Below are positions 19,788 through 52,241 of a stretch of DNA of 64,000 nucleotides, in pieces (positions within the stretch are counted from its first letter, which is position 1; the number at the start of each line of letters is the position of its first letter). The stretch is from the IMG/VR virus record IMGVR_UViG_3300042549_005931, positions 124,001-188,000 of that record; one strand, given 5' to 3'. Below the pieces are notes generated by a model. The model did no database searches, had not been told where the DNA came from, and saw nothing but the letters and a program-made list of their open reading frames with translations. The translations under genes were made by a program, and so were the position numbers.

Positions 19788-22715
19788 TTAGATATTCTCG
19801 AATGATGCTCCTGTTGGAGTAATGATGAATTCTAAGTCAATAAATTCAAGTGCTCTCGTTGGCTTGATATAAATCTTACCTCTTAAAGTATTTGCATCAA
19901 TGTCCTCAGGGTCATTAGATACTGTAACTTTGAATTCATTTAAACCTCTTTCTTTCTTAATTGAATCCAAGATAGGATTAACCAATCTCAAGAACTCATT
20001 TCTTACTTGTTCGTCATTTTGTTCGAATAGTAATCTAACTGCTACTGCTGAAATTAACTTTCTTGCTCTTAACAATAATCTTCTTACGTTGATTCTGTCT
20101 AATGCAGATTCTTTAACTTGTAAAGTTTTGTTACCCCAAATGATTGTACCTGTATCAGCAAATGTTGCGATAGGGTTAATTCTATTTTTGTATAACTCAT
20201 CTCTTTCATCAAGTGTTAATTTTTTAGTTGCTTTGATTGCATTTACTAAACCTCTTGAATAACCTGCCGGTGCAAACCAAGGATACGCTACGTTATCTGT
20301 CAACGCGATGTTCTTTAATACTTCACCTGTTGGTGGGATGTAAAGTTGTGTTGAGTTATCAGTATCTTTTATTTGAACCCAAGGCCAATATGTTGCTGAA
20401 TAATTAGAGTCAATTGACATATTATCTAATTCACTTGCAATATCATCAGCGGTTGTGATATATTCAGGACCCGGAGCGTTTATTACGTATAATGAATCAG
20501 CTCTATCGTTTTCCACCATATCAATCGCATTAGAAACTAATGAACCATGATTTGACCAATCGATACCCGGTGTTGCGAATAAGTTAATATCAACAGCTTC
20601 AGGATTAGAGAATGTTTGAATACCTTGTAAGTAAGCGTAGTAGTCTGAGTTAGGTGAACCATCGGTGGTTACCTTAAACACACCACCATTATCAGTATTA
20701 CCACTTGTGTAAGTCGCTCTACCTAAAACAAATGCATCTGTATTTGTTCTTGTGTTTCTATAGATATCCCAACCATCAAATCCACCAAACAATGCAAATG
20801 TAAATTTACGATAATTGATATTTGTTAATTTATTATCTGTACCTGTTTGACCTTCTAAATCGTATGGTGTTGTTTGGAACTCAAATGATGGTATTGTATT
20901 ACCAGTAGCCTCACCTATTGTTGCTGCGTTAGATGATAAATGGAAACCATAAGTTACCGTATCCCCACTTACTCCTTTGAATTTCAATAAGTCACTATCA
21001 AATCCAACCTGTGTAGACAATCCTAACATTACCTTTTTAACTTTATCTCCACTTGTAGTATTTGGTACACCTGATGTACTGTAACCTGTTACATCACCCG
21101 CATCATAATATTGTGTTTTAAAAAGTACACTACCTAATGTATTACCATTATCATTGGTGAATGAACTAAAACCCTTGAAACCTGCCGGTATTGCATCTGT
21201 TGGATGATTGTCAGCTAAAATAATTGATACATATTTTGAACGTAATTCATAATCACCATCCGAAGTACCAATTTTTCTACCAATATAGCCGGTCGCCTCA
21301 GGATTCATTGAACATCTTGAATATTTCTCTAATACCACCATATTTTCGTCGGTATCACCATAATCACGAATTAATAAATCAAATTCCGCCGTGTCTAAAT
21401 TAATGTTAATTACAGAAATTTTCAATTGGAAGTTAGCGTCTTCACCATCTGAAATAGTTTGTAATTGGAATAAATCGGATACATTTCCACCACGTACCTC
21501 AGATACAACCATTGGTGATACAGTAGTATCCCACTCAGTTGCAAAATTACTTGTCTCAGAAGTATCTGTTAAAGATGAAACATCTAAACCTCTAATATAT
21601 CCTTTTTCAAAAGCGGTTGCCAATAATTTTGGATAAACTTCGTGTACATATAACGGGAAATCAGAAGCCGATTTATCGAATACTTTTCCACCTAATACTT
21701 TCTTAATGTATTTTGAAGATGATGTGTCTAATGAACATACGAATGAAGTTCCACCCGTAACGGTTGCCCCTGTTACGTTAATTACAAACTCACCTAATGG
21801 ATTAGTTGATAAATCAAAACCCGTATTATCAGAAATCGATACTTGAGTTGAACCAGTAACTTCAAGATTTAATTGTTGGGTAACACCATATGAACCACGT
21901 GGTCTTAATGCCGTAACAACAATTCCATCATAATCTGTATTTAAAACCGCATCAAATGAAAATCTTGTTACGTTAAAAATATTAGCACCACTACTCCATT
22001 CAAATAAGTATGAATAAACCGTGTCAGTACCATCGTTATATGTGTTATACCAGTTTTTATTATATGTTGATGATGCATAATTTGCACCCGTCATTGGTGA
22101 TACCACTTCAGTACCTGTCGGAATTTCAGCAGTTGGGATAACCCCAATTGCAAACCATAGACCAGTATTACCTGTTAGACCACTATATGTTTCATAAATG
22201 TAGTCAGTTACGGTACTACCATCAAAAGCCATCTTAGTTGAAAGTTCAGCATAATATGTACTACCTGTAAATCCTGATAATGGATTTGGGTCCATATTTT
22301 CAGTTACACCTGTAATCACATTATCCAACCATTGGTCTTCCAACGTCGCACCTGTTGCAACTACCGGTGAAAATCCACCTAATGTTGTGATACCTAAAGT
22401 AATATTAGGTTTATATCCAGTTAAACCAAGTACTCTTGTTACGAATAATTGATTTGACTCTTGTAAATAAGATTTTGCTACGTAAGGTAACTCATATTTT
22501 GGATTGTTGTTTCCGAATTTCTCAGGAGACGTTCCACCAAAATAAGTTTTGAATTCGTCGAAATTAGAAATTAAAATTGGTTCAAATGCTGGACCTTTTA
22601 ATGTCTCACCAACTAATCCCAATGTTGTTACTCCGACACTTTGCGCTACGAATGTTAAGTCTTTCTCGGATGTATAAACACCGGGAGAAACGAATACTCT
22701 GTTTGAATTTGCCAT
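19788..22715 (-). CDS. tail sheath protein (T4 gp18-like)
   Basis: VSPGVYTSEKDL N-terminus; YSATYWPW, WFAPAG..RG, WGNKTL, RINVRRLL, FEQND C-terminal domain. Confidence 0.96.
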   Translation of the reverse strand: MANSNRVFVSPGVYTSEKDLTFVAQSVGVTTLGLVGETLKGPAFEPILISNFDEFKTYFGGTSPEKFGNNNPKYELPYVAKSYLQESNQLFVTRVLGLTGYKPNITLGITTLGGFSPVVATGATLEDQWLDNVITGVTENMDPNPLSGFTGSTYYAELSTKMAFDGSTVTDYIYETYSGLTGNTGLWFAIGVIPTAEIPTGTEVVSPMTGANYASSTYNKNWYNTYNDGTDTVYSYLFEWSSGANIFNVTRFSFDAVLNTDYDGIVVTALRPRGSYGVTQQLNLEVTGSTQVSISDNTGFDLSTNPLGEFVINVTGATVTGGTSFVCSLDTSSSKYIKKVLGGKVFDKSASDFPLYVHEVYPKLLATAFEKGYIRGLDVSSLTDTSETSNFATEWDTTVSPMVVSEVRGGNVSDLFQLQTISDGEDANFQLKISVININLDTAEFDLLIRDYGDTDENMVVLEKYSRCSMNPEATGYIGRKIGTSDGDYELRSKYVSIILADNHPTDAIPAGFKGFSSFTNDNGNTLGSVLFKTQYYDAGDVTGYSTSGVPNTTSGDKVKKVMLGLSTQVGFDSDLLKFKGVSGDTVTYGFHLSSNAATIGEATGNTIPSFEFQTTPYDLEGQTGTDNKLTNINYRKFTFALFGGFDGWDIYRNTRTNTDAFVLGRATYTSGNTDNGGVFKVTTDGSPNSDYYAYLQGIQTFSNPEAVDINLFATPGIDWSNHGSLVSNAIDMVENDRADSLYVINAPGPEYITTADDIASELDNMSIDSNYSATYWPWVQIKDTDNSTQLYIPPTGEVLKNIALTDNVAYPWFAPAGYSRGLVNAIKATKKLTLDERDELYKNRINPIATFADTGTIIWGNKTLQVKESALDRINVRRLLLRARKLISAVAVRLLFEQNDEQVRNEFLRLVNPILDSIKKERGLNEFKVTVSNDPEDIDANTLRGKIYIKPTRALEFIDLEFIITPTGASFENI

Positions 22716-22759
22716 TGATTAATGTTTGGTTAAAATTTTTTTATTAGTTTTATTATAAA

Positions 22760-24246: not shown

Positions 24247-24247
24247 T

Positions 24248-31272: not shown

Positions 31273-32085
31273 TTATGTTAATCTAATTAAAACGTAACTA
31301 CCACTTCTATATAGTCCTTGTAATGGTACTCCACCAGCCGCGGCTGCCGCGTCATTTGTAAAACTTGAGGTTACATTTGATAATATTGTAAATCCGTCCG
31401 TTTTTAAATTATTATTTAATTTAAGACTGCCGCTAAACTCGTATGTGTAACCACTTGTTACTGAACCGGTATTAAAACTAATTGTTGTTCCCGTGTGTAA
31501 AGTTATATGTGGAGTTTGCCAATTACCCATCGTAAATAACTTAACTTTGGCAGGATGTTGAGAACCACCTAATGTTCCGACATACATGTCTTTACCGGAA
31601 TTTATTAAGTACGAGTCATTAGCCAAACCAACCGCACCACCATTATACGTTGATGAGTTAATACCCAAATCAACATAATGAATTATCTCATTACCATTAT
31701 CTGCGGTTAATACTAAATCCGTACTGGCAAATGTACCACTATTGGTGTTTTTAATGTTAACTTGTGCATATACTTGGTTATTTCCCTCAAAATGTGCAAT
31801 GTTATAACTTCCATTATTTTGAACATGTAATATTTCAGGTTGTATGTCTTGACCACTTTGAAATGACCCGGTACCAATAATTAAACTTGGTATCTTTCCT
31901 GTAATTGTTAAATCACCATTAATTGTTTGACTCCCCGTAAATGAGTGTGAGCCACTATCAACTAATGACTGTCTTAATATAGATAATGTTGATTTATATG
32001 TTGTGCCACCATGGACAATTGCCGTTACCCCACTTAATGGTGGTGCTAGTGAACTTGATAATTCCGATATTTTTTTACTTGCCAT
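31273..32085 (-). CDS. short tail fibre / virion appendage protein
   Basis: KKISEL N-terminus, FTGSQTINGDLTITG, and C-terminal NDAAAAAGGVP..GLYR typical of fibres. Confidence 0.6.
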   Translation of the reverse strand: MASKKISELSSSLAPPLSGVTAIVHGGTTYKSTLSILRQSLVDSGSHSFTGSQTINGDLTITGKIPSLIIGTGSFQSGQDIQPEILHVQNNGSYNIAHFEGNNQVYAQVNIKNTNSGTFASTDLVLTADNGNEIIHYVDLGINSSTYNGGAVGLANDSYLINSGKDMYVGTLGGSQHPAKVKLFTMGNWQTPHITLHTGTTISFNTGSVTSGYTYEFSGSLKLNNNLKTDGFTILSNVTSSFTNDAAAAAGGVPLQGLYRSGSYVLIRLT

Positions 32086-32098: not shown

Positions 32099-33211
32099 TT
32101 AATATAATAATATATTATTGTCCTCAGTTAATAAATTTTCACTATTTTCAGATAAAATACCCACATCCGTGAACCCATTCAAAACGTCACTACATGTATT
32201 TGTAACATCGGTTATATTATAATATGGTTTAACGGATGTTAAATAGTTATGATTTATCTGTATTGGGTTTAGTGGCTCTTCATAATATCTAAATCGCTCA
32301 AACCTAAAAGATGTATCTGAAAATTCATGAATACCACCTGAATAAAATAATCCACCACCCCAAACGTGTTCAATAAGGTGTTCTCCATCCCTAACTGACG
32401 GTATAATCTCTTCCCAATTCTCTAATTTGTAAATTCTTTTACCGTTTACAAATATTGACAAAGTACCTAATCTTTTATTTCTCTCATTCCACCACTTTTC
32501 ATTTAACACCTCAATAAATGACACGTCTTCAGTTGCGCCCGTTAGTGTATCCATTGGATTACTAACAGTGACTCCGGTTATCATGTCATTATAACCACCC
32601 TCATTTGCAATATCACAATCTGTATATTCGGAATAACGTTTGAAAGTAATTGCAATGTTGAATATTAAGTTATTATTACTTAAAAATGGTTCTTCAAACA
32701 TTTGTTCAGTTTGACCTGATGAGATATAACTGGTTTCAGTAAATCCTGAAATGGTATTACAATATCCAGAATACCTATAAGATAACCACTCAATCCTACC
32801 ATCTGATGTAAATTTAAATGATAAATTATTATCTAAATAATGTTCAGGTTCAGATTCGGAATTAATACCAATATAAAACAAATTATTCCCATTAGACCAA
32901 GGTTGACCAAATTTATTAATTGTGGCATCGATTGTCCAACCAAGTTCAGTTCTTCTTCTAATAAAAAATTCACAAGTACCACCTGAGTATTGTTCATTAA
33001 TATCGTAACTATAAGGTAATAAAAGACCGTTAACACAGTTAGAATCAAAAACTAAAGAATCATAGGTTATTGTACCACCGGTGGTTAAATCCAACAAGTC
33101 TTTGTCATAATCCGAGTCTGTTTGAACTAATTCAAAGTCATATAACTCCGAATTGTCTAATTTTAAATCCAATTTAGACCCATAAAACTTTAAAATATTC
33201 TGACTATTCAT
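32099..33211 (-). CDS. putative virion structural protein, lectin/LamG-like beta sandwich
   Basis: GTLSIFVNGK...FRYYEEPL...I..NY pattern; six [ST]GxT motifs; late motif upstream. Confidence 0.5.
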   Translation of the reverse strand: MNSQNILKFYGSKLDLKLDNSELYDFELVQTDSDYDKDLLDLTTGGTITYDSLVFDSNCVNGLLLPYSYDINEQYSGGTCEFFIRRRTELGWTIDATINKFGQPWSNGNNLFYIGINSESEPEHYLDNNLSFKFTSDGRIEWLSYRYSGYCNTISGFTETSYISSGQTEQMFEEPFLSNNNLIFNIAITFKRYSEYTDCDIANEGGYNDMITGVTVSNPMDTLTGATEDVSFIEVLNEKWWNERNKRLGTLSIFVNGKRIYKLENWEEIIPSVRDGEHLIEHVWGGGLFYSGGIHEFSDTSFRFERFRYYEEPLNPIQINHNYLTSVKPYYNITDVTNTCSDVLNGFTDVGILSENSENLLTEDNNILLY

Positions 33212-36583: not shown

Positions 36584-37810
36584 ATGTCAAAAATTAAAAT
36601 ACTCGCTATTCCATCGGATTCACACGGTGTTGGCAAATTCAGAATCTTAGACCCATACAAATATATTGGGGATAATTACATTGGTGATATTCACGTTGAT
36701 ATTTCATTTAATGTACCCAATACAAACGAATCTTTCAATGGATACGATATTGTAGTATTCCATAGTTTTATACATCAAACAACACACGAAGATAATATTG
36801 ATAGAATCAAGTGGTTAAAAAAAGAAGGTATTAAAACTATCATGGATATTGATGATTTTTGGTCACCGGACCAAAGACATCCAATGTATCAACAAATAGT
36901 TACATCAAGAATTGCAGAAAGAAAACTGGATATGTTAAGATTGGTTGATTATATCACAACAACCACACCAATTTTTGCAAAAACAATCCAGAATAAATTA
37001 AACACAAAAAATGTATTAATTTACCCCAATTCAGTTAATGATGAGGAACCACAGTTTAAACCAAACCCAATAAAATCAGATAAAGTAAGATTTGGATGGT
37101 TAGGTGGTTCATCACACTTACATGATATTGAATTAATGTCCGATGGTATCTCAACAACATTAGATAATCTTAAAGATAAGACACAATTTGTGTTATGTGG
37201 GTTCGATTTAAGAGGCTCCGTAACTGAAATTGATAGAAATACCAATGAACAAAGAAAAAGACCTATCAGACCAACAGAAACTGTGTGGTATCGATATGAA
37301 CAGGCGTTTACCAAAAATTATACATCCTTAGATTTGGATTATCGAAATTATCTACTTAATTTTACGGAGTTACCATATAACGATGAGGATAAAATTTATA
37401 GAAGAAGATGGACTCAGGATATTATGAAGTATGCTAACAACTACAATTATTTTGACGTGTCTTTAGCACCATTAGTTGAGTCAACATTCAACGCAAATAA
37501 ATCTCAGTTGAAAGTTATTGAGGCGGGTTTCCATAAAAAAGCAATCATTGCAAGTGAAACTGACCCTTATACATTAGATTTAATATCTGCAGTTGATAAT
37601 GGTAACTTTAATAGTAATGGTAACGCATTATTAGTTAACCCAAAACGTAATCACAAAGATTGGGCTAAACACATGAAACGTTTAGTTGATAATCCTAATA
37701 TGATTGAAGATATGGGTAATCGTTTATATGAAACAGTAAAAGACAAATATTCATTAAGAAAAACCTGTCAAGATAGAGTAGAATTTTTTAAATCAATTAT
37801 TAACAATTAA
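36584..37810 (+). CDS. glycosyltransferase, GT-B fold (GT4-like)
   Basis: DIDDFW, RFGWLGGSSHLHD, DVSLAPL...FN..KSQLKVIEAG. Confidence 0.88.
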   Translation: MSKIKILAIPSDSHGVGKFRILDPYKYIGDNYIGDIHVDISFNVPNTNESFNGYDIVVFHSFIHQTTHEDNIDRIKWLKKEGIKTIMDIDDFWSPDQRHPMYQQIVTSRIAERKLDMLRLVDYITTTTPIFAKTIQNKLNTKNVLIYPNSVNDEEPQFKPNPIKSDKVRFGWLGGSSHLHDIELMSDGISTTLDNLKDKTQFVLCGFDLRGSVTEIDRNTNEQRKRPIRPTETVWYRYEQAFTKNYTSLDLDYRNYLLNFTELPYNDEDKIYRRRWTQDIMKYANNYNYFDVSLAPLVESTFNANKSQLKVIEAGFHKKAIIASETDPYTLDLISAVDNGNFNSNGNALLVNPKRNHKDWAKHMKRLVDNPNMIEDMGNRLYETVKDKYSLRKTCQDRVEFFKSIINN

Positions 37811-40444: not shown

Positions 40445-41501
40445 TATAGAAAACATTGAAAAATTAGAATCCGCATTGGGTAAATTAGAGTCGAGTGAAA
40501 ATGTTGTGTATTTTTTAACATACGACACGAGAAATAATGCAAGAGCATCAATTAAATACATTTATGATTTGGCTAAAACACTAAAAGAGAATGGAACAAA
40601 AACTAAGATTTTAGTTGAGGACAAAACTTATGCCGGTGTTGAATCTTGGTTAGGTGACATGTATAAAGATATTGAAGTAGTTTCAATTAAAGATGATAAA
40701 CCGGTTATTAACTTGGAAGATGTTTTAGTAATACCGGAATATTATTCAAACGCATTACAACAATTATCAAACATTCGTTGTGTGAAAGTAATGTTAGTAC
40801 AACAAAAAGATTACATCTTTGAAAACTTACCTATCGGTAGTAGATGGAGTGATTATGGTATTGATAGAGTAATCACTACCACGGAGGCAAGTAAAAAATA
40901 CATAATGGATTATTTTCCTGAATCGTTAGTATTCATTATACCACCAATCATTGAAGATATTTTCTCACCACTTGATTTACCGGCAAAACCATACGTAGCA
41001 ATTAATTGTAGAGATAGAATCATGCAGAGAAGATTGATTTCAGAATTCTATATTAAATTCCCACAATTAAGATGGGTTACATTTAGAGATATGATTCAAT
41101 TATCATATGATGAATTTGCAACAAATTTAAAAGAATGTATGGTTTCACTTTGGGTTGATGATGAATCGACATTTGGTACATTCCCATTGGAATCAATGAA
41201 ATGTGGTGTACCGGTAGTTGGTAAAATACCTAATACTGAACCTGATTGGTTAAATGAAAATGGTATGTGGACATATGACTCTAATAAATTGGTTGAAATT
41301 TTAGGAACATATGTTTTAGCTTGGTTAGAAGGTGTTGAATTAACTGGTGAAGTTAACAACAAAATGAAAGAAACACTTTTACCATACGAAAAATCAATAA
41401 CACAAAAAAACATAACATCAGTATTTGGTTCGTTTAAAAACAAAAGAATAACAGATATTACAAAAGCGATAGATAATTTAAAACAAGAAGAAACAGTATG
41501 A
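40437..41501 (+). CDS. glycosyltransferase-like protein, GT-B fold
   Basis: DVLVIPE and STFGTFPLESMKCGVPVVG (GT4 E-x7-E region, first Glu diverged). Confidence 0.78.
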   Translation: MSNIENIEKLESALGKLESSENVVYFLTYDTRNNARASIKYIYDLAKTLKENGTKTKILVEDKTYAGVESWLGDMYKDIEVVSIKDDKPVINLEDVLVIPEYYSNALQQLSNIRCVKVMLVQQKDYIFENLPIGSRWSDYGIDRVITTTEASKKYIMDYFPESLVFIIPPIIEDIFSPLDLPAKPYVAINCRDRIMQRRLISEFYIKFPQLRWVTFRDMIQLSYDEFATNLKECMVSLWVDDESTFGTFPLESMKCGVPVVGKIPNTEPDWLNENGMWTYDSNKLVEILGTYVLAWLEGVELTGEVNNKMKETLLPYEKSITQKNITSVFGSFKNKRITDITKAIDNLKQEETV

Positions 41502-42280
41502 AAAATATAACAGTTATTTTACCCATCCATAGATTAGATGGTAACTATAAAGAAATGTTTAGCAACGCAATTGAATCTTTAAAAGATTTCCATAATGACG
41601 TTAAACTATCTATCGTATGTCCAAACGATGTCAATATTACCCAAGAATTAAGTTCCATTACAAGTAATTTAGAAATTAATACTTTAACACATAATGGTCC
41701 TACCGATTTTTGTTCCCAAATTAATTATGGTGTTGAAAATTGTGATACAGAATGGTTTTCAATTTTAGAAATTGATGATGTTTATAAACCGATATGGTTA
41801 AAGTCAATGAATGAATATGTAAACATTTATCCAGATGTTTCAGTGTTCTTACCAATTGTAAAAGATATTAATGAAGAAGGTAAGTTTGTTAGTTTCACTA
41901 ACGAATCTACATGGGCTTACGGATTTAGTGAAAGACAAGGATTTTTAGATAATGAAGTATTGTTAGATTTCCAAAACTATCAAACAAGTGGTGGTCTTTA
42001 TAAAACACAAGTTATTAAAGATAATGGTTTATTTAAGGACAATATCAAATTAACTTTTAGTTACGAGTTCTTATTACGTTTAACACATAATGGTGTTGCG
42101 ATTATGACAGTACCTAAAATCGGATATCAACACGTAAATTTTAGAGAAGATTCATTATTTTGGAGTTATCAAAATGAAGGTACTAAACTATCTGAAAAAG
42201 AAGCTAAGTTTTGGTTGGAAACTTCTAAGAAAGAATTTTTCTTTAAGAATAAACGTGAGATTGAATATGTAGAAGCTTAA
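41498..42280 (+). CDS. glycosyltransferase family 2 (GT-A fold)
   Basis: ITVILPIH, INYGV...DTEWFSILEIDD, YEFLLRL. Confidence 0.85.
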   Translation: MKNITVILPIHRLDGNYKEMFSNAIESLKDFHNDVKLSIVCPNDVNITQELSSITSNLEINTLTHNGPTDFCSQINYGVENCDTEWFSILEIDDVYKPIWLKSMNEYVNIYPDVSVFLPIVKDINEEGKFVSFTNESTWAYGFSERQGFLDNEVLLDFQNYQTSGGLYKTQVIKDNGLFKDNIKLTFSYEFLLRLTHNGVAIMTVPKIGYQHVNFREDSLFWSYQNEGTKLSEKEAKFWLETSKKEFFFKNKREIEYVEA

Positions 42281-42978
42281 TGCCAAGAAAAAGAACCCAA
42301 AAGATATACTTTGGGGAGGAACAAGAACAAGCGGTAGTACGATATTTAGAATCCGATTCCGATATAGAAAGAAACAAGATATTCAATGAATATTTAAGAG
42401 ACCCCCTCGTTATAATGGTTGAATCAATTATTCGACGTTATAAATTATATAGAAAAGACTTAGAATTTGAAGACATACATTCAGATACTATGTCTTTTCT
42501 TATTACCAAAATTAATAAGTTTGACCACACTAAAAACCATAAGGCATATTCTTACTTTGGAACTATTTGTAAGAATTACCTTATGGGTGCCATACAAAAA
42601 GATACCAAAGAAACTAATCGTAGTGTGTCTTATGATGATATTTCATCTGACATCGAGGATAGGGCCGATTTATCTTATGTTATCGATGAGTACGTAATTG
42701 ACTATAGAGATGTTATCATTAAATTGACAATGTCTTTAGAAGAATTTATGGAAAGTGAACAACTAACGGATAATGAACAAAAATTAGGATACGCTTTACT
42801 TGAAATCTTTAGTAATTTTGATAAAATTTTTCAAGTTGGTGACGGAAATAAATTTAACAAAAATCTTATTTTATTGTCATTGAGAGAAATGACATCACTA
42901 TCCACTAAGGAAATTAGAATATCCTTAAAAAGATTTAAAAGAATGTATGACGGTATTTTAGGTGGATTTTTAGAATAA
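42280..42978 (+). CDS. phage RNA polymerase sigma factor (T4 gp55-like late sigma)
   Basis: Region 2-like EDIHSD...LITKINKFD..K.HKAYSYFGTICKNYL. Confidence 0.75.
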   Translation: MPRKRTQKIYFGEEQEQAVVRYLESDSDIERNKIFNEYLRDPLVIMVESIIRRYKLYRKDLEFEDIHSDTMSFLITKINKFDHTKNHKAYSYFGTICKNYLMGAIQKDTKETNRSVSYDDISSDIEDRADLSYVIDEYVIDYRDVIIKLTMSLEEFMESEQLTDNEQKLGYALLEIFSNFDKIFQVGDGNKFNKNLILLSLREMTSLSTKEIRISLKRFKRMYDGILGGFLE

Positions 42979-42992
42979 ATCTATTTATTACT

Positions 42993-43373
42993 ATGAGACC
43001 GAAAAGAAATTTAATAACGTTGGAGATTGATTCAGCGTTATCTTTGATGCAAGAAATCTACAATGACATTGTAGAGCAAAAAAACACGGCATCTTTAATT
43101 ATGAAAAAGATGTTATCGTTTATGAAAGACGCTGAAGACATGAGCGTTATTGGACCTGTCATTAAGGAACAACAAAAAATTCTTAATGAATGTACCGAAA
43201 AGAAAATATCATTAGTTAAGTTACAAGGTGTTATGTTGAAACAACAACAATCAAGTGGTGCTGCCGGTGGTGGTTTCACAGGTAAATTAACATTATCTGA
43301 TGAGGATAGAGATATATTAGATAAGTTAATGAATGATGATTCAGATAAAAGTACTAACAACTACAAGATATAA
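42993..43373 (+). CDS. helical hypothetical protein (possibly terminase small subunit)
   Basis: Two long helices plus a flexible tail; late motif 3 nt before the ATG; function is a guess. Confidence 0.4.
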   Translation: MRPKRNLITLEIDSALSLMQEIYNDIVEQKNTASLIMKKMLSFMKDAEDMSVIGPVIKEQQKILNECTEKKISLVKLQGVMLKQQQSSGAAGGGFTGKLTLSDEDRDILDKLMNDDSDKSTNNYKI

Positions 43374-45283
43374 TGAGTAAGATAAAAGATTTACGAAATA
43401 AGATTAAGTCCAATATTGAGTCAGTTAAGAGAATTAACGACCAAACAAAAGACAAGGTATCTGAAAGTAAAAAGAATGCGTCAGATAAATTTGATAATTT
43501 CTTAAAAGACCTACCAAGTTCGGACAAACTTTTTAGTAAAAAAATATCTGATTACGCAAACAACAAAAAAAATAATAAACAACAAAAAAATAAAGTTTTT
43601 GAAGATTTATTAGAAATTGTTCAAGGGTTTGTTGGTGTTAATAATGTTGTTGAAACTTCTGATTTATTAAGTAACAAACAAAAATTAAAAAACATTACTT
43701 TAAAATCAATTGACCACACATTAAAAAGTTCACAAAATGTAATTACGGGTAATGTTAAAAAAGTGTTATTTACGGGTGATGGTATATGTGGAGGTAATCC
43801 AATAATGCCGGTTAATTCGATACAATTAAAACCTACCGAATTTGATTTTATGAATGTTTTAACTGTAGACCCAAATAGTAATAGCGGTAAAATTGTATAT
43901 GAACAAGATTCAACACTACACAATAGTGGACTAATCAAAATGAATAGTTTATTATATGAATCATTTTCAGGTGGTGTTAAACCATTCGATTTAAAAAATG
44001 ATATCACACTTTTTAATATGGAATGGAGTGAATCAAATCAAGAATACAACTTTACTAATTTAACTGGTGGTACAAATAATATTGAAGATTGGGTTACATC
44101 ATATTATAGTAATATTGAATTCCTTGACATAAGTGGTGTAACAAAAAATGCTGTGTTAATGACCTTAAAAGGTGACGGAAATGAACCACCATTATTTGAC
44201 AAGGGTTGGAATGATTTAAATCGTTTAATGGCTAAAATGTGTGCAAGTTGTGGTAATCCAAATACTGGTTTAAATCCAAGTACTGCAACACAATTTAATG
44301 AAAATGATGAAGATGTCTCATCATACTTTGATTTTGAATCAAGTGAAGGTATTGATGTGGACGAAGAGTCTGCAAGATACAATAAAGTCTTAAAATTTAA
44401 AGATTGTAACAACTATGAAGTAAAAAGTAATCCGGAACATTTTGAGGATTTTGCGTATACGTCACAAAAAAAGAATATTAACGATGCGGTAAATGATGCA
44501 TTACTACATAGTGCCGGAGAAGCTTATGAAAAATCGGGTCAGTCACAACCACTTGATAATTTTCATATTTCTATTATGAATTCATTTATTGCAAATTTAC
44601 CAAACGCTTTAATGGGTGCAGTATTGTCTCCAAAATATATATTACCGATTTCGTTGATATATAAAGCAGTAACAACCACTGAAGAAACTGTTAAAAATTT
44701 AATGAGAAAATTATCAAAATTATTTAATCAAATCATTACAGATTTATATTGGATTTTTATTGAACAATTTTGGAAATTGATAAAAGTTGAATTACTTGCA
44801 CTTTTAAGTAAAACTGCTGCCAAAATATTACGTAACAAATTTGCAGATTATACATTAATAATTACAACATTAATATCGTTATTAACTGACATATTGGATA
44901 ATACTTTAGATAATTGTGATGGGCTATATAATGTTATTTCAAAAACCATAGACATTGCACTTAGTGGGAAAGGTGGTACACCGGCAATACCGGGATTATT
45001 ACTATCAATTGCAGATTTAAAAGGTGGTTACAGTACTGATTTAGCACAAATAGACATTATGCAAAGAGTTGAAGGTTTAGGTGTTAATACCTCAACAATT
45101 AATGGAGAAACAAATAAATTACATGATTTAGTAAAAGGTATTTTAGATGGACAATGGTCAACACAAAAGAAACATGGTTATACTGAAGCGTCTAATCAAT
45201 TTGTGATATTACCCCCACCAGTACCTGGAGTCCCAATGATTTTACCACCGGGTTTAATAAAAACAGTAGGTATACAAAGATAA
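43373..45283 (+). CDS. hypothetical, probably structural protein (636 aa)
   Basis: Intact ORF in the late operon upstream of the spike-like gene. Confidence 0.65.
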   Translation: MSKIKDLRNKIKSNIESVKRINDQTKDKVSESKKNASDKFDNFLKDLPSSDKLFSKKISDYANNKKNNKQQKNKVFEDLLEIVQGFVGVNNVVETSDLLSNKQKLKNITLKSIDHTLKSSQNVITGNVKKVLFTGDGICGGNPIMPVNSIQLKPTEFDFMNVLTVDPNSNSGKIVYEQDSTLHNSGLIKMNSLLYESFSGGVKPFDLKNDITLFNMEWSESNQEYNFTNLTGGTNNIEDWVTSYYSNIEFLDISGVTKNAVLMTLKGDGNEPPLFDKGWNDLNRLMAKMCASCGNPNTGLNPSTATQFNENDEDVSSYFDFESSEGIDVDEESARYNKVLKFKDCNNYEVKSNPEHFEDFAYTSQKKNINDAVNDALLHSAGEAYEKSGQSQPLDNFHISIMNSFIANLPNALMGAVLSPKYILPISLIYKAVTTTEETVKNLMRKLSKLFNQIITDLYWIFIEQFWKLIKVELLALLSKTAAKILRNKFADYTLIITTLISLLTDILDNTLDNCDGLYNVISKTIDIALSGKGGTPAIPGLLLSIADLKGGYSTDLAQIDIMQRVEGLGVNTSTINGETNKLHDLVKGILDGQWSTQKKHGYTEASNQFVILPPPVPGVPMILPPGLIKTVGIQR

Positions 45284-45284: not shown

Positions 45285-45485
45285 ATGGATGTAGAAAAAT
45301 TAATTGATGTAACAAAAGATTATGAAAACAAATCAAATAAAGACTTATTTGATGCTGTTAACTTATTATACGAAGAACATGAAAAAACTAAAGAACTTAT
45401 TATTGAATTAACAAAACATTTAGAAAATGTTGAATATTATTATAATAAAGTTAATGACGAAGTAGGAAAAAGAATAAAGAAATGA
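45285..45485 (+). CDS. small coiled-coil protein (66 aa)
   Basis: Intact, coupled ORF. Confidence 0.65.
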   Translation: MDVEKLIDVTKDYENKSNKDLFDAVNLLYEEHEKTKELIIELTKHLENVEYYYNKVNDEVGKRIKK

Positions 45486-46993
45486 AAATAATTGATATTG
45501 CGGTTTGTATTGATAATAGAGACCCCGAAAATTTAGGTAGAATACGTTGTATACGTTATTCAAATTACACCGGACAAATAGAAAAGGCTTTTGATTATGA
45601 GGCGTGGGATGATAAAGATTTATTCACAGCTTTACCATTCTTACCAAACAATATCAACTTCATTCCCGAGATTGGTCAAACTGTTAAGGTTATAAATTAT
45701 AATACTGACAAAGAAACTTCAAATGCGGAATATATTGCGGGTCCATTTACTACTCGTCATGATTATAACGCACAAACACACTCCGTACAACTTGAAAGAA
45801 CCACATATGGTAATGCCGCAAAACACGGTAAAAAAATAATTGACGATAAAGGTAATTTTATAGATAAAAAATCCCAAGGTGTTTTAGCAAAACATAGTGA
45901 CTTTGGTGTATATGGAAAATATGGTTCAGATGTTTTATTTACTGAGAATGGTCTACAATTGAGAGGTGGTAAATTAACCACCAAAGATTCAGCAAAAGGG
46001 AAAGAAAAGAAGGATATGTTATACAAACCTTTATTAAGTAAAAAATTGGCAATTTTGTATTTAAAAAAATTCTCTAAAGCAAAAGAATATAAAATCGAAG
46101 AAGTTGAAACCAAAAAATTAGCTAGTGCCGACATTAGATATTTTATTGAATATAATATTAATAATTTTAATGGAGGCTCTGTCACCATAGATTATTATGT
46201 TTATCAAGTTAATAAAGCGTATGGAGATGTTTATAGAACATATAACCCAACATTACTTGACGCTAAATTAATTGATGGTCATTATAAATTAATTAATACA
46301 GATGGAACAACAACAACACCAACATTTACAAAAACGGCATCCAATTTAGTTGAAACTTATGTAACCATAAGAAATGATATAAAGTCATTACACTATAAAG
46401 GTTTAAATGAATTTAATGTCACCTATACTAGTGATGATTTACACCCATTTTATTTTAGACCAACAAAAGAATCTAGAGAAAATTTGGATTTAACTAGTGC
46501 ACAATTAGAAAACCGTATTAATATTTTTAAAAATATTTCTATTAATTCAAAATCAGGTCCCGAACATGGTTTAGCATTTCAAAAAACATCAATATCACCG
46601 CCGGAAATAACAATAAAACGAAAAGAACAAGTTTTAAAAGATTTGACAGGTAGTATGGAACAGACATTTTCCGCATTAAAATCTGATAAGATTTATTTTT
46701 TAACAACCGACCCATACAACTCTTCACAAAAACCGATTAATTTTGAGAAATTAGACAAATACGAATTAACTCAAGATAATTATTTAAAAGATATTGAACC
46801 TAACACTTATGCGACGGTAAGAGGTGAAACGTTATTAGAATTTTTACGTTCAGTGTATGAAGTATTAACAACCCACATACACAACATTAACGAACCTTAT
46901 GCTAAGTTAGCATACGATTCACATGATAATATGGAAATATTATATCAAAAACTTGAAGAGGATATTTTAAATAAATCGATTAGAATAAATTAA
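45482..46993 (+). CDS. baseplate central spike-like protein (gp5/VgrG N-terminal OB fold)
   Basis: DNRDPENLGRIRC, IPEIGQTV.V...YIAGPF, and C-terminal VRGETL....THIH. Confidence 0.7.
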   Translation: MKIIDIAVCIDNRDPENLGRIRCIRYSNYTGQIEKAFDYEAWDDKDLFTALPFLPNNINFIPEIGQTVKVINYNTDKETSNAEYIAGPFTTRHDYNAQTHSVQLERTTYGNAAKHGKKIIDDKGNFIDKKSQGVLAKHSDFGVYGKYGSDVLFTENGLQLRGGKLTTKDSAKGKEKKDMLYKPLLSKKLAILYLKKFSKAKEYKIEEVETKKLASADIRYFIEYNINNFNGGSVTIDYYVYQVNKAYGDVYRTYNPTLLDAKLIDGHYKLINTDGTTTTPTFTKTASNLVETYVTIRNDIKSLHYKGLNEFNVTYTSDDLHPFYFRPTKESRENLDLTSAQLENRINIFKNISINSKSGPEHGLAFQKTSISPPEITIKRKEQVLKDLTGSMEQTFSALKSDKIYFLTTDPYNSSQKPINFEKLDKYELTQDNYLKDIEPNTYATVRGETLLEFLRSVYEVLTTHIHNINEPYAKLAYDSHDNMEILYQKLEEDILNKSIRIN

Positions 46994-47015: not shown

Positions 47016-48395
47016 ATGTCATATTTTCGTTCATATTTTGAGAAAAACAACACATTAATAAAAAATGCTCATGTCAATACATCTAAAAACCCGACCACTG
47101 AGATTTTTTATGGTTCCGCATATTCAAGATTTTTATTTAAAATTGATATGGTTGAACTACAATCAATGATTAATAATGGTGACTTAGTTGTTGATGATAA
47201 TACAAGACATTATCTTAAAATGACTAATACCATTTTTGGTGATGAAGGTTTAAAAGGACAAAACAGACAAACAGGTAGAGATAGAGCAACATCGTTTAGA
47301 TTGGAGTTATTTGAAATAACTGAAGATTGGAATGAAGGTTACGGTTTTGATTATGAAGATGCTGGTTATGATTTTACTTCAGGTAATAAAACATTTAGTG
47401 AAGTCCCATCAAACTGGTTTAAAAAGAATACATTGTCGGATTGGCAAACACAAGGAGCATATATTGGTACCGGTACAACATTAACAATTGTTGAATTTGA
47501 TAACGGTAACGAAAATTTAAATGTTGATATAACTGATTACGTAAATGGTATTTTAACAGGTAACACCACAAACCACGGAATTGGTATTAAATTTGTAGAT
47601 GATTACGAAACGTTAAATGCAGACGTTGACCGTTCAGTTGCTTTCTTTACAAAATATACACAAACATTCTTTGAACCATTTATGGAATCTGTTTTTGATG
47701 ACAGAATAAGTGATAACAGACAAGACTTTGTTGAAAAGACATATCAGAATCTTTATCTATATGTAACTAAAGGAACAAACTATTATGATTTAGATGAATT
47801 ACCGATAGTTAACATTTTAGATAATACAAATACCCCAATTGCCGGTTTAAGTGATTTAACTACAACAAAAATTAAAAAAGGAGTTTATCAAGTTACATTT
47901 GGTATTGATGGCGATGTATTTGTGTGTGACGGAAAGAAATTCTTCTATGATAATTGGAGTAACTTATCAATTGATGATGTTTCATTATCCGACGTAAAAC
48001 AAAAATTCATTCCAAAACCATTAACATCAAAATATACAATTGGAGATAATCCAACAGAATTAAAAAGATATTCTATTCAATATTTTGGAATCAATCAAAA
48101 TGAAAAAGTAAAACGTGGTGAATTACGTAAAATTGTAGTTTCATTCAGGTCAATAAATGAACCTAAAACAGTTTTATTTGATGAGGTTTATTATAGAATG
48201 TTCATCAAAGAAGGTAGAGTTGATGTAATGGTACATGATTGGACTCAAATTGATAAAACAAATGAGAATTCTTTCACATTAGACACATCTTATTTAATAC
48301 CAAGAGAATATTTTTTAGAAATTAAAGGTAAAACACATTCTGAAGAAATATTTTATAACAACTACATAAAGTTTGAAATACTATCCGAAAAATAA
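47016..48395 (+). CDS. virion structural protein (DNRLRE-like plus Ig-like domains)
   Basis: SRFLFKID, ITEDWNEG.G, VDITDYVNG, NHGIGIK patterns; late motif upstream. Confidence 0.55.
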   Translation: MSYFRSYFEKNNTLIKNAHVNTSKNPTTEIFYGSAYSRFLFKIDMVELQSMINNGDLVVDDNTRHYLKMTNTIFGDEGLKGQNRQTGRDRATSFRLELFEITEDWNEGYGFDYEDAGYDFTSGNKTFSEVPSNWFKKNTLSDWQTQGAYIGTGTTLTIVEFDNGNENLNVDITDYVNGILTGNTTNHGIGIKFVDDYETLNADVDRSVAFFTKYTQTFFEPFMESVFDDRISDNRQDFVEKTYQNLYLYVTKGTNYYDLDELPIVNILDNTNTPIAGLSDLTTTKIKKGVYQVTFGIDGDVFVCDGKKFFYDNWSNLSIDDVSLSDVKQKFIPKPLTSKYTIGDNPTELKRYSIQYFGINQNEKVKRGELRKIVVSFRSINEPKTVLFDEVYYRMFIKEGRVDVMVHDWTQIDKTNENSFTLDTSYLIPREYFLEIKGKTHSEEIFYNNYIKFEILSEK

Positions 48396-48922: not shown

Positions 48923-48923
48923 T

Positions 48924-49811: not shown

Positions 49812-49838
49812 TTAAACATACTTTCATATATTTGTCAC

Positions 49839-50437: not shown

Positions 50438-50465
50438 ATTACAAATATACCAAAAAATTGATAAT

Positions 50466-50494
50466 AAAAAAAGGGACAACTTCGTGTCCCTTTT
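50466..50494 (-). terminator. rho-independent terminator after the major capsid gene
   Basis: AAAAGGGACA-N6-TGTCCCTTTT with a T tract on the minus strand. Confidence 0.82.
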
Positions 50495-50516
50495 AATATT
50501 ACTACAATTCTATTGA

Positions 50517-52241
50517 TTAACGTAAAGTATCGATAGAGAATGTTTGTAAACCACTTACATTAATTACACCAAAGTAACGGTTGTTAACCATTTTCTTCGC
50601 ATAACGAGTCATGATACCTTTGATAGGTGTGAAGTTAAATGGATTGTACATTGTTGGAGTTAATTGTAATGGTACGTATGGTGCGTAGATGTAACCTGCA
50701 TCCAATAATGACTTACCTTTGTGTCCAATCAAGATTTTTCCTGCTGGGAAGTAAGGGTCACGGAATACTTGGTAACGACCTGCTAATGTACCAACTTTTT
50801 CAATACCCATGTTGTATGAGTCTTGCTCAGGACCTGCGTTTGAAACGTGGAAGTACTCTAAATCGTCAAATACTGCAGAAACTTCTGAAGAAATAACAAT
50901 CCAGTTAGCACCACCTCTCAAAGTAGTCTTGTGGATTTGTGCTGAAATTTGGTTAACTTTAGTAATTAAAGTTTGGTTCCAGTCTTTTTGAGTGTAACCT
51001 TGTAAAGTTGCACCACCGTTTCCACCATATTTCCACTCATTGTAATCCCACTTAGCTGTCCAAGCCGCACCTTTACGTAAATCACGTAAGATTTCACGGT
51101 CAACCTCAGCAGCGATTTGCTCAGATAACAATGCAGTTAATTCTGCTTCAGCATCAATGTTGTGGAACGCTGAAACGTCTTGAGCTAACTCAGGAGACCA
51201 AGAAGCTCTTAATTTTCTTTCAGTTACAGAAACTGTTACAGAATCTAAATCGAAAGAAACCTCACCGATAGCATCTTCAAATTCTAAAGAAGCGTATTGA
51301 CGATAAGTTGCAACAAAGTCAGAACCAACTAAAGTTGAACCTGCAACTGTGTGGTTACTGAAACCTGCTGTAGATGAATAAGTTTGTAAATCAACGTTTA
51401 AGTAGATTACACCATTAGCATCACAAATGTCATTATATTGACCAGTAATACCTGCAGATTTTGTTCCGTATTCTACAATACCTTTACCGTATTTTTGAGT
51501 TACCACAGTAAATGGTAAAGCCGCACCCGATTGAACTTGTGCCGCTGAGATAGCCAAAGAAGCTAAGAATTCTTCAGTATCCATTTCGTTTCCGTTAGGA
51601 CCCGCTAATTTACCTGCACCACCACTAGTGAAACCTGATAACTTAACGATAACAGAACTTAAAGAAGTACCTGTAGTTCCTGTGTAAGCACTTTCAACAC
51701 CTGAAGCGAAAGTAACGATTGATGTTCCAGTTAAAGAAATTGTTGAATAATCACCTTTTGAGTAATCAAACAATCCTGAATCAGCAGCATCTGAAGTTTC
51801 ATAGAAACGGTCATAAAGATTAGTTCCTGTGTAACCAGTTGTTGCAGATGTTCCACCAGCACCACCAGGGATACCGTATGGAGAATAGTGTGCTCCTGCA
51901 TTTCTTTCCTGAATTTTAGGAATGAAATAGAATAATTTACCGATAGGTAAGTTCATAGCCTGAACTGAAACGATATCGTTCGCTAATAATTTAGAGAATA
52001 CACGACGGATGATAGGGAATACCACTGTCTCGAATGAACCTGAAGCGTCAGATACTGCTGCTTCGTTGATTAAGTAAGACGCTTGGTTTTCATATAATTG
52101 CGCGATGTTATCTCTTTGGTGACCGTTAAGACCTTCTAAAAAGCCTAAATCATCCCATTTTTTGATGGTATCTTCTTTGATAACACGAAGGTGCTTAAGA
52201 CCGATGTTACCAACCATACCTGATTCTAATAATGCTCCCAT
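50517..52241 (-). CDS. major capsid protein (T4 gp23-like)
   Basis: VSVQAMNLP.G, RKLRASWSPELAQD..AFH.IDAEAEL, YAPYVPL, P.KGIMTRY. Confidence 0.97.
   Translation of the reverse strand: MGALLESGMVGNIGLKHLRVIKEDTIKKWDDLGFLEGLNGHQRDNIAQLYENQASYLINEAAVSDASGSFETVVFPIIRRVFSKLLANDIVSVQAMNLPIGKLFYFIPKIQERNAGAHYSPYGIPGGAGGTSATTGYTGTNLYDRFYETSDAADSGLFDYSKGDYSTISLTGTSIVTFASGVESAYTGTTGTSLSSVIVKLSGFTSGGAGKLAGPNGNEMDTEEFLASLAISAAQVQSGAALPFTVVTQKYGKGIVEYGTKSAGITGQYNDICDANGVIYLNVDLQTYSSTAGFSNHTVAGSTLVGSDFVATYRQYASLEFEDAIGEVSFDLDSVTVSVTERKLRASWSPELAQDVSAFHNIDAEAELTALLSEQIAAEVDREILRDLRKGAAWTAKWDYNEWKYGGNGGATLQGYTQKDWNQTLITKVNQISAQIHKTTLRGGANWIVISSEVSAVFDDLEYFHVSNAGPEQDSYNMGIEKVGTLAGRYQVFRDPYFPAGKILIGHKGKSLLDAGYIYAPYVPLQLTPTMYNPFNFTPIKGIMTRYAKKMVNNRYFGVINVSGLQTFSIDTLR

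Follow-up and report, generated by a model that had tools for sequence, protein, structure and literature searches.

The 64,000-nucleotide stretch analyzed here (the window) comprises positions 124,001 to 188,000 of IMG/VR record IMGVR_UViG_3300042549_005931 and belongs to a large group of uncultured T4-like jumbo phages. It encodes a tail sheath, a major capsid protein (MCP) of the gp23 family, several proteins presumed to belong to the virion, and three glycosyltransferases (GTs), two of which lie in a gene chain with a phage sigma factor (Table). Along this chain, formed by GT-B, GT2, sigma, p126 and p636, start and stop codons abut or overlap. A short motif, [ST]G.T, recurs in several of the likely virion proteins, and a preliminary description had proposed that it is a sequon for glycosylation of the virion by the phage's own GTs.

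Table. Features of the window related to the [ST]G.T motif. Expected numbers are from shuffled sequences; family values are observed/expected ratios over orthologues.
Position	Strand	Feature	Length (aa)	Motifs in window (expected)	Family ratio	Basis and remarks
5082..10850	-	Presumed fibre or baseplate protein	1922	5 (1.1-1.3)		p=0.006-0.009; no orthologues in the loci retrieved
11160..15977	-	Presumed baseplate or fibre protein	1605		3.1	36 motif columns, 22 of them in reference aa 750-899 (hot spot in orthologues)
19788..22715	-	Tail sheath	975	12 (1.7 global; 2.1-2.3 local)	6.6	PF04984/PF17482, phrog_23; 58 orthologues carry 4-14 motifs each
20694..22355	-	Sheath variable insertion region (aa 121-674)		all 12 sheath motifs
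31273..32085	-	270-aa protein (p270), the "fibre" of the preliminary description	270	3 (0.8-0.9)	2.9	Marginal, p about 0.04-0.06
32099..33211	-	370-aa protein (p370), predicted ConA-like lectin jelly-roll core	370	6 (0.36-0.46)	7.0	Orthologues carry 3-12 motifs
36584..37810	+	GT4-like GT-B glycosyltransferase	408			phrog_7162 4e-39; weak PF13692
40437..41501	+	GT-B glycosyltransferase, Agt/AmGGT-like	354			PDB 8xsg (AmGGT), E=4.9e-5
41498..42280	+	GT2 (GT-A fold) glycosyltransferase	260		1.6	PF00535 4e-6; overlaps the GT-B stop by 4 nt and the sigma start by 1 nt
42280..42978	+	Sigma-70 region-2 protein (phage sigma factor)				PF04542 2.6e-5; 79-88% identical in relatives
43373..45283	+	Poorly conserved protein (p636), last of the gene chain	636	2 (0.35)	4.5
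45482..46993	+	Poorly conserved protein	503	0	2.8	14 motif columns
47016..48395	+	CBM96-like protein by language-model and structure look-alikes	459	2	7.2	23 motif columns
50517..52241	-	Major capsid protein (gp23 family)		3 (aa 135, 187 and 202)	4.8	PF07068 5e-73; p=0.03-0.11

We first recounted the motif in the translated genes. The numbers given in the preliminary description for the sheath, p370, p270, the MCP and the polymerase (two sites) were all exact, and the three GTs and the sigma factor are where it had placed them; its observation is therefore confirmed. Whether enrichment could be explained by S/T/G composition alone had been put forward as a way to disprove the idea. We compared the counts with 5000 shuffles, either global or within 40- or 20-aa blocks. 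For the sheath and p370 the excess survived every kind of shuffle (p<2e-4), whereas in the window alone the MCP, p270 and the 1922-aa protein (5 against 1.1, p=0.007) are marginal. To exclude a pattern picked by eye, all three-residue gapped patterns (about 48,000) were scanned without bias in the sheath plus p370. TG.T ranked first and SG.T second, TG.T giving 11 occurrences against 1.14 expected (p=4e-8, about 2e-3 after Bonferroni correction).

The motif is ordered and exact. In a set of enriched proteins, which was chosen after seeing the data, local shuffles gave 35 [ST]G.T against 9.1 expected (z 8.6), and 25 against 3.0 (z 12.6) when a hydrophobic residue was required at -1. Near variants were not enriched, whether with S at +3 ([ST]G.S), with A ([ST]A.T) or N in place of G, or with a spacing of 0 ([ST]GT) or 2 ([ST]G..T). 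Neither the Bacteroidota O-glycosylation sequon nor N-x-S/T (84 against 92.7) was enriched. On the orthologue alignments, the motif exceeded all 17 permutations of the same residue classes, both in mean count and in number of distinct alignment columns. It acts at the protein level, because codons vary. The enriched proteins contain no internal repeats and share no homology detectable by BLAST. The three fixed positions are kept or lost together at polymorphic sites.

The motif recurs across the clade, in about 60 sheath and 75 MCP orthologues, and turns over among 14-39 alignment columns per family. The 75 MCP orthologues average 2.64 motifs against 0.55 expected, spread over 38 columns. By contrast, observed/expected ratios were only 0-0.6 for the tube, portal, TerL, protease, helicase and the protein at 22996, as well as for the GT-B and the GT4-like enzyme. 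The GT2 (4 occurrences against 2.4 expected in 33 orthologues) is not enriched either. The two sites of the polymerase are frozen with an invariant x and are thus incidental. The "virion proteins" of the preliminary description is too broad a term, since the tube, the portal, the 22996 and 24248 proteins and the 644-aa protein are not enriched, and several enriched proteins are only presumed to be in the virion. Outside the clade, no such enrichment was found in T4, Mel-JY01, LR756508, Flavobacterium phage immuto or a phi92-like phage.

The position of the sites was then examined, as buried motifs had been named in advance as evidence against a surface modification. In the sheath, motif columns lie almost only in reference aa 75-374 and 450-674; one column at about aa 750-824 carries the motif in a third of orthologues. 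Residues ~100-640 stand where T4 gp18 has residues 88-300, so that the sites fall in the regions replacing its outward-facing domains. In the MCP, nearly all columns lie in reference aa 100-349, in the divergent insertion part between the two stretches that align to T4 gp23. Exposure rests on this homology mapping and on low-confidence models, solvent exposure itself not having been calculated. In the AF2 model of the sheath, pLDDT is 70-85 for aa 101-390, and the sites sit in loops, strand ends and short helices. The model of p370, also of low confidence, gave generic lectin/CBM jelly-roll matches, and p370 orthologues add PT-rich linkers and extra C-terminal domains.

None of the three GTs has a membrane segment. 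The GT4-like enzyme is 54-73% identical in clade relatives and 40% in distant lineages, with 26%-identical homologues in phi92-like phages. The GT2 is conserved next to the GT-B in all relatives, and the order GT4-like...GT-B-GT2-sigma is kept down to 25-40% identity. The GT-B has 481 clusters of homologues; all six that were looked up lie on contigs of this phage group, five with the same gene order and the sixth on a 1.3-kb contig without context. GT-B and GT2 have no homologue in 50,697 phage records. The only solved relative of the GT-B, AmGGT, belongs to the Agt family, whose members extend protein-linked glucose (PMC12159676). This similarity is weak and the family also acts on free oligosaccharides, but the nearest named bacterial cluster is likewise "alpha-1,6-glucosyltransferase". 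Distant relatives add variable sugar pathways beside the module, including NeuB, a CMP-transferase, a GT29, a faint Maf-like hit, GLF and epimerases.

Motif and GTs were compared between lineages, since relatives that lack the GTs but retain the motif would have contradicted the proposal. The nearest phages without GT-B/GT2 homologues do not carry the enrichment, and distant lineages that keep the GTs still show it (MCP 3 against 0.48; a p370-like protein 6 against 0.49), although in two of them the 47016 orthologue has no motif. No lineage separates the GTs from the motif: every motif-rich lineage has them, so that the co-occurrence amounts to one phylogenetic event and is not replicated. Against the proposal, a phi92-like phage with a four-GT cluster and a distant GT4-like homologue shows no motif enrichment.

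Altogether, the interpretation given in the preliminary description is partly supported, each of its own tests that could be run having been passed. Our preferred reading, to which we give a probability of about 0.4, is that Phi-[S/T]-G-x-T is a recognition site for cytoplasmic O-glycosylation of virion proteins by the phage's own soluble GTs. The analysis itself establishes a real, ordered and exact protein-level motif, lying almost only in variable insertion regions, mapped as outward-facing, of several unrelated proteins and gained repeatedly at different positions across a large clade, together with a deeply conserved module of three GTs without membrane segments in the same genomes. The remainder is inference, and no data here show that any sugar is attached. 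In this view, the GT2 or the GT4-like enzyme would put a first sugar on a Ser/Thr hydroxyl of the motif, on proteins folding or assembling in the cytoplasm, although no GT here can be assigned as a peptide-initiating enzyme and no known protein GT uses such a sequon. The Agt-like GT-B would extend the chain, and lineage-specific pathways (nonulosonic acid, galactofuranose, deoxyhexose) would vary the glycan. The result would be a glycan coat on head, sheath and appendages.

It is also possible, and only slightly less likely, that the motif is selected but unrelated to the GTs. It might be a lineage-specific structural or assembly element of the decoration domains, such as a favoured strand-end, turn or helix-cap (buried hydrophobic residue, S/T cap, Gly, then a beta-branched Thr), or a contact or recognition element for another virion protein or chaperone. 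The hydrophobic residue at -1 and T/S at +5 fit a strand or turn context, the modelled sites sit in loops, strand ends and short helices, and some sites are conserved in position for 50-85% of orthologues. In a fibritin-like relative, the motif recurs once per 60-aa coiled-coil repeat, sometimes with Cys instead of Ser. The GTs would then serve something else, such as DNA hypermodification or remodelling of host surface glycans; phage GTs are best known for DNA glucosylation and host modification (PMC12619734, PMC12838424). Such targets are not excluded, the window covering 64 kb of a 269-kb genome, but no hydroxymethylase-type or T4 AGT/BGT-type gene was found in it. Moreover, a general structural preference should also appear in the T4, Mel-JY01 and immuto homologues, and it does not. 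The motif occurs in proteins with no detectable homology to one another (the ConA-like and CBM96-like folds are leads only) and in mixed secondary-structure contexts, and its turnover among columns is unlike a fixed structural residue set.

Recognition by a factor other than the three GTs, for phosphorylation or another modification or processing step, perhaps by a host enzyme, appears unlikely. The exact spacing, all-or-none co-variation and positional turnover point to recognition by some factor without identifying it. However, no kinase or other protein-modifying enzyme was identified among the genes of the window, and the host's known sequon is not enriched; that system is periplasmic and cannot reach cytoplasmic virions. 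The GTs are the only conserved candidate modifiers seen. An artefact of composition, repeat ancestry, DNA-level signal or selection by eye is very unlikely. The regions are indeed rich in T, S and G and orthologue counts are not independent, but the local shuffles and permuted patterns exclude composition, and the unbiased scan, codon variation and absence of repeats or a shared domain detectable by BLAST do not support the other forms of artefact.

Glycosylation of phage particles by phage enzymes has a precedent. In mycobacteriophages Che8, Corndog and Myrna, soluble phage-encoded GTs are proposed to decorate capsid and tail proteins in the cytoplasm, giving a glycan coat (Freeman et al. 2023, as cited in PMC12619734 and PMC11256854). 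In those phages of actinobacteria, glycosylation is demonstrated and sits on C-terminal extensions of capsid and tail-tube subunits. Here it is only inferred, the host is probably a member of the Bacteroidota, the candidate sites form a defined internal motif in insertion domains of sheath, MCP and appendage proteins, and the tube has none. T4-type glucosylation of hydroxymethylcytosine by alpha- and beta-glucosyltransferases and other phage DNA glycosylation (PMC12838424; bioRxiv 10.1101/2023.12.21.572611) also involve soluble GT-B enzymes in a T4-like phage. No gene of the window has a Pfam match to the T4 AGT or BGT families, and DNA glycosylation would not explain the protein motif. The "moraphages", jumbo aquatic phages with predicted Bacteroidota hosts (PMC12619734), share the core gene set: T4-like structural genes, a sigma-F-like factor, PhoH, dUTPase and four core orthogroups of putative GTs whose target the authors leave open. 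That paper reports no motif, and we did not establish whether the clade is identical with the moraphages.

Cellular and eukaryotic-virus systems offer further comparisons. Actinobacillus/Haemophilus cytoplasmic N-glycosylation (NGT/HMW1C plus Agt alpha-1,6-glucosyltransferase) modifies surface proteins in the cytoplasm at a short sequon and involves the Agt/AmGGT family, to which the only solved relative of the window's GT-B belongs. However, no NGT (GT41) was identified in the window, and AmGGT itself acts on oligosaccharides rather than glycopeptides (PMC12159676). Self-encoded capsid glycosylation in chloroviruses and giant viruses is the subject of reviews (PMC5408694, PMC9614988). Virus-encoded cytoplasmic machinery acts there on the major capsid protein at atypical, virus-specific sites, but these are eukaryotic viruses with N-linked glycans at Asn in other sequence contexts; homology to them was not examined. 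Finally, flagellin O-glycosylation with nonulosonic acids (Maf-type transferases) is a cytoplasmic modification of Ser/Thr in surface-exposed regions of a polymerising protein. Flagellin sites have no strict sequon, and the window itself has none of these genes. One distant relative of this phage, however, carries NeuB, a CMP-sugar synthetase, a GT29 and a faint MptE/Maf-like hit just upstream of the GT-B-GT2 pair.

The window belongs to a 269-kb contig, IMGVR_UViG_3300042549_005931 (IMG/VR), and has a G+C content of about 31%. It encodes a gp23-family major capsid protein (MCP), a T4-type sheath, tube, hub, portal, prohead protease and large terminase (TerL), together with a DNA polymerase, PhoH, dUTPase, dCMP deaminase and a sigma-70 region-2 protein. 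The phage, which is uncultured, is a distant T4-like jumbo myovirus. No cultured phage is close, the best cultured matches being Flavobacterium phage immuto and Microcystis phage Mel-JY01, at about 41% MCP identity. Its gene set resembles that of the "moraphages" described from aquatic metagenomes with predicted Bacteroidota hosts (PMC12619734), although membership of that group was not established. The positions of the genes and loci considered below are collected in the table.

Positions of the genes and loci considered in this part (L numbers designate loci retrieved from other phages or contigs)
Feature	Sequence	Position	Strand
GT4-like glycosyltransferase	window	36584-37810	
GT-B glycosyltransferase	window	40437-41501	+
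GT2 glycosyltransferase	window	41498-42280	+
Chain of GT-B, GT2, sigma factor, 126-aa and 636-aa proteins	window	40437-45283 (junctions 41498/41501, 42280, 43373)	+
Small 101-aa protein	window	40139-40444	+
Two adjacent small proteins, weak T5orf172 and WYL hits	window	34530-35896	+
Same-frame ORF pair	window	59426-61990 (60968-61990/59426-60964)	-
Same-frame ORF pair	window	61990-63594 (62392-63594/61990-62388)	-
Overlapping ORFs	window	22996-24760 (22996-24285 with 24248-24760)	-
Overlapping ORFs	window	48410-49673 (48410-48922 with 48753-49673)	+
Two separate genes at the place of the 48410-49673 overlap	L205	18227-19793	
Nonulosonic-acid-type cluster	L205	1092-9655	
Nonulosonic-acid-type cluster (same contig as L205)	L213	7247-19078	
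UDP-galactopyranose mutase, RmlD-like reductase, double GT2	L210	442-6704	
Epimerase/dehydratase	L204	579-1670	
534-aa fibritin-like protein	L212	1969-3573	-
Four-glycosyltransferase cluster	L201 (phage phi92)	10644-13820	
Four-glycosyltransferase cluster	L203 (phage alia)	43544-46720	

The preliminary description had reported an excess of [ST]G.T in virion proteins, and this observation held, its counts being exact. It had also stated that an explanation by S/T/G composition alone would refute its reading, and we compared the counts with 5000 shuffles. The sheath contains 12 [ST]G.T against 1.7 after global shuffling or 2.1-2.3 after shuffling within 40- or 20-residue blocks, and the 370-aa protein (p370) contains 6 against 0.36-0.46, both with p<2e-4. 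The other proteins are marginal in the window alone. To rule out selection by eye, every three-residue pattern in six gapped shapes was scored. TG.T is the top pattern and SG.T the second for sheath plus p370 (11 vs 1.14, p=4e-8), and both are among the four strongest over all window proteins.

The codons at the fixed positions vary as in the background (ACA/ACT/ACG/ACC, TCA/AGT, GGT/GGA/GGG). The signal is therefore in the protein, and a DNA-level motif was rejected. In nine proteins taken together, [ST]G.T occurs 35 times against 9.1 expected (z 8.6), and 25 times against 3.0 (z 12.6) when a hydrophobic residue is required at -1. These nine proteins were chosen after the family analysis, but the sheath and p370 results stand on their own. 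The motif is exact, since the near variants [ST]G.S, [ST]A.T, [ST]N.T, [ST]GT and [ST]G..T are all at expectation. Neither the sequon of Bacteroidota general O-glycosylation, D-[S/T]-[A/I/L/V/M/T] (35 vs 28.5, z=1.3), nor N-x-S/T (84 vs 92.7) is enriched. The other 43 window proteins have 8 motifs against 5.3. A redundancy-weighted profile gives Phi(-1, 57% hydrophobic vs 34% background)-[S/T]-G-x-T, with T/S favoured at +5.

The clade is common in metagenomes, as more than 600 IMG/VR contigs matched the sheath and more than 600 the MCP. Fifty-eight distinct sheath orthologues (66-93% identity) carry 4-14 motifs against 1.0-1.9 expected, and p370 orthologues carry 3-12. Summed over each orthologue family (families without a common name are designated by the first nucleotide of the window gene, or by protein length), the observed/expected ratio is 7.2 for 47016, 7.0 for p370, 6.6 for the sheath, 4.8 for the MCP, 4.5 for 43373 (the 636-aa protein), 3.1 for 11160, 2.9 for p270 and 2.8 for 45482. 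It lies between 0 and 0.6 for the tube, portal, TerL, protease, the 52278 and 22996 proteins, helicase, PhoH, dUTPase, GT-B and the GT4-like enzyme, and is 1.6 for GT2 (4 vs 2.4). The polymerase scores 5.3, but this comes from two frozen sites with an invariant x, which is ordinary sequence conservation. Pfam, PHROG and NCBIfam searches returned nothing for p370, p270, or the 47016, 43373, 45482, 11160 and 5082 proteins.

In the enriched families the motif appears at many different alignment columns. As a control preserving both phylogeny and composition, we counted the 17 other orderings and spacings of the same residue classes on the same alignments. [ST]G.T is highest in mean count. In number of distinct columns it is highest or, in the 43373 family, tied for highest: sheath 39 vs at most 34, p370 33 vs at most 15 (26 for the overlapping TG.[ST]), 47016 23 vs at most 15 (20 for TG.[ST]), MCP 38 vs at most 27 (29 for TG.[ST]) and 11160 36 vs at most 20. 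Together with the global and local shuffles, these permuted patterns reject composition as the explanation. At polymorphic sites the three fixed positions tend to be all present or mostly all gone, a pattern to which alignment shifts and shared ancestry can contribute. A shared inserted domain or internal repeats were also rejected, as the enriched proteins gave no significant BLAST hits with one another and the sheath has no internal repeats.

All motif columns fall in poorly conserved insertion regions and none in the conserved cores. A profile of the sheath family aligns positions 632-958 to T4 gp18 residues 298-653, and the N-terminus weakly to residues 4-84. About 540 residues therefore stand where gp18 has its domains I and II, which face outward in published structures. 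In the MCP, residues 324-548 and 68-106 align to gp23, and the motif-bearing stretch lies between them. Exposure of the sites on AlphaFold models had been proposed in advance as a criterion. The models are poor overall (mean pLDDT 48 for the sheath and 51 for p370) and solvent accessibility was not calculated, so that restriction of the sites to exposed parts of virion proteins is suggested by the homology mapping without being settled by it. Only sheath residues 101-390 reach pLDDT 70-85, and the nine sites located there sit in loops, strand ends and short helices, with no single structural context. The predicted p370 core matches generic ConA-like lectin and CBM jelly rolls, and the 47016 protein has CBM96-like look-alikes. 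Many p370 orthologues (loci L005, L013, L015, L016, L020, L025, L027 and others) continue after the conserved core into long Pro/Thr-rich linkers (TPTPTPT...), and some then add extra C-terminal domains, reaching 480-1150 aa. The window's copy lacks the linker.

Outside the clade, the 49-kb structural region of T4 gave 11 motifs against 11.2, with none in gp18. Mel-JY01 gave 6 vs 7.4, with none in its sheath, and the huge phage LR756508 gave 5 vs 3.2. Immuto gave 38 vs 21.5 overall, mostly in Thr-rich fibres, whereas its sheath has 2 vs 1.3 and its MCP 0 vs 0.53. The enrichment is therefore specific to this lineage and is not a general property of T4-like structural proteins.

The GT4-like protein is a GT-B enzyme (phrog_7162, 4e-39). 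The second enzyme, referred to here as GT-B, has no Pfam hit but matches AmGGT (PDB 8xsg) in a phmmer search (E=4.9e-5). AmGGT is a GT-B relative of Actinobacillus Agt, which extends glucose already N-linked to peptides (PMC12159676). The nearest named bacterial look-alike cluster of the window's GT-B is "alpha-1,6-glucosyltransferase" (score 0.98). These similarities point towards an Agt-type elongating enzyme but do not suffice to assign it as one. The third is a GT2. None of the three has a membrane segment, so they could act in the cytoplasm. No HMW1C-like GT41 initiating enzyme was found among the Pfam, NCBIfam or PHROG hits of the window proteins, and no T4 AGT/BGT-family transferase was detected, Pfam giving only weak Glyco_trans_1_4 and Glycos_transf_2 hits.

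GT-B, GT2, the sigma factor, the 126-aa protein and the 636-aa protein have abutting or overlapping stop and start codons, suggesting translational coupling of the GTs with a sigma factor and a presumed virion protein. A scan for the T4 late-promoter consensus TATAAATA, intended to time GT expression, was uninformative (19 vs 14.4 expected). The small 101-aa protein lies just upstream of GT-B and overlaps its start. Twelve of its 21 orthologues carry one [ST]G.T (about 0.6 expected in total), although the window's copy has none.

All three GTs are present and syntenic in every relative with enough flank, at 54-74% identity where the gene is complete. GT-B and GT2 have no tblastn match in 50,697 phage records. 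The GT-B family comprises 1,509 clusters at 90% identity, and an exhaustive search found 481 clusters of GT-B homologues. All six that we examined, at 25-40% identity, lie on contigs of this phage group. Five show the same PhoH...GT-B-GT2-sigma-p130-p6xx order, while the sixth is a 1.3-kb contig holding only the gene itself. The GT4-like enzyme was recovered at 40% identity in two of those lineages. These relatives add different sugar genes beside the module. One, a more distant relative with an MCP 55% identical (L205 and L213, both from the 117-kb contig ena:ERZ27297473:k141_929959), carries a nonulosonic-acid-type cluster directly upstream of GT-B-GT2-sigma, comprising NeuB, a CMP-sugar synthetase, a GT29 sialyltransferase-family protein, a faint MptE/Maf-like hit, three methyltransferases and another GT2 (GT2_5). 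Another (L210) has UDP-galactopyranose mutase, an RmlD-like reductase and a 497-aa double GT2, and a third (L204) has an epimerase/dehydratase. The conserved GT module thus appears to have a lineage-variable sugar-supply region next to it.

In the distant lineages that keep the GTs, the motif persists in some proteins: 3 vs 0.48 in the MCP at 55% identity, 3 vs 0.37 in a 453-aa protein and 6 vs 0.49 in a p370-like 515-aa protein. The 47016 orthologue has none, and the sheath genes of these lineages were not reached. Co-occurrence of motif and GTs among related phages had likewise been put forward as a test: lineages with the GTs have the motif and phages without GT-B/GT2 lack it, but this amounts to a single phylogenetic split, which leaves co-variation undecided. 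The phi92-like coliphages carry a conserved cluster of four GTs next to the primase/helicase and polymerase genes, one of which is a distant homologue (26% identity) of the window's GT4-like enzyme; no stated function was found for the cluster. Phage alia, which carries it, gave 16 motifs against 11.9, providing no support for a link between this type of cluster and the motif.

Altogether, the motif behaves like a recognition site. It has exact spacing, a strict Thr at +3 and S or T at position 0, it turns over in position while its density is maintained, and it is restricted, in one phage lineage, to regions mapping to the outer parts of proteins with no detectable homology to one another. 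The only conserved candidate modifiers seen are the three soluble GTs, and the variable sugar pathways next to them in relatives suggest a diversifying surface glycan. We therefore rank phage-encoded O-glycosylation at this sequon first, with a probability of about 0.4. The motif and its distribution, and the conservation of the GTs, are results of the analysis, whereas sugar attachment and the participation of the GTs are inferred. The preliminary description had proposed that the phage GTs decorate surface loops at a phage-specific sequon, forming a glycan shield, and this interpretation is partly supported. The link is circumstantial: glycans on virion proteins were not measured, the co-occurrence is a single phylogenetic event, and no GT can be called a peptide-initiating enzyme. 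The main rival, which we consider only slightly less likely, is that the motif is a lineage-specific structural, assembly or binding element unrelated to the GTs. In a fibritin-like coiled-coil protein of a relative (L212), repeats of about 60 residues each contain NTNL(D/N)TL-[S/C]-G-[F/Y]-T-x-x-EIERL, so that the motif or a Cys variant recurs once per repeat, which fits either reading. A DNA or host-glycan role for the GTs is not excluded either. The possibility that the DNA rather than the virion is glycosylated had been named beforehand as an objection. No dCMP/dUMP hydroxymethylase or other route to a modified base was found in the 64-kb window, where only a dCMP deaminase and a dUTPase were found, but the other roughly 200 kb of the contig were not examined and the question stays undecided.

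In its fullest form, which is possible but tentative, this reading holds that a large, abundant clade of aquatic T4-like jumbo phages runs its own cytoplasmic protein O-glycosylation system with a defined five-residue sequon, Phi-[S/T]-G-x-T. A conserved GT4-like/GT-B/GT2 module would coat head, sheath and appendages, and lineage-specific sugar pathways (nonulosonic acid with a GT29 sialyltransferase, galactofuranose, deoxyhexose) would diversify the glycan. Virion glycosylation by phage enzymes is known in mycobacteriophages, and virus-specific capsid sequons are known in chloroviruses. In the literature searched, no paper describes a TGxT/SGxT-type sequon or sheath glycosylation, and the moraphage paper notes four core GT groups while leaving their target open (PMC12619734). 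If the motif is a sequon, it would be the first defined acceptor motif for phage virion glycosylation, and the first case in T4-like myoviruses and in phages of (probably) Bacteroidota. A glycan coat would affect particle stability, adsorption, grazing and recognition, and the evolution of capsid surfaces, and a short portable sequon with three small soluble GTs would also be a useful glyco-engineering tool. Even if glycosylation is wrong, an exact four-residue motif repeatedly re-created in unrelated surface domains of one phage clade needs an explanation.

Elsewhere in the window, two adjacent small proteins between p370 and the GT4-like gene give weak T5orf172 (E=2e-4) and WYL (E=2e-3) hits. 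Two ORF pairs are each in the same frame, separated only by a stop codon plus one codon. This could be chance adjacency or stop read-through, and all four proteins lack family hits. Finally, two pairs of neighbouring ORFs overlap in different frames, by 38 nt (22996 and 24248 proteins) and by 170 nt (48410 and 48753 proteins). These are probably over-extended GTG/TTG starts rather than frameshifts, and a relative (L205) has two separate genes at the second place.
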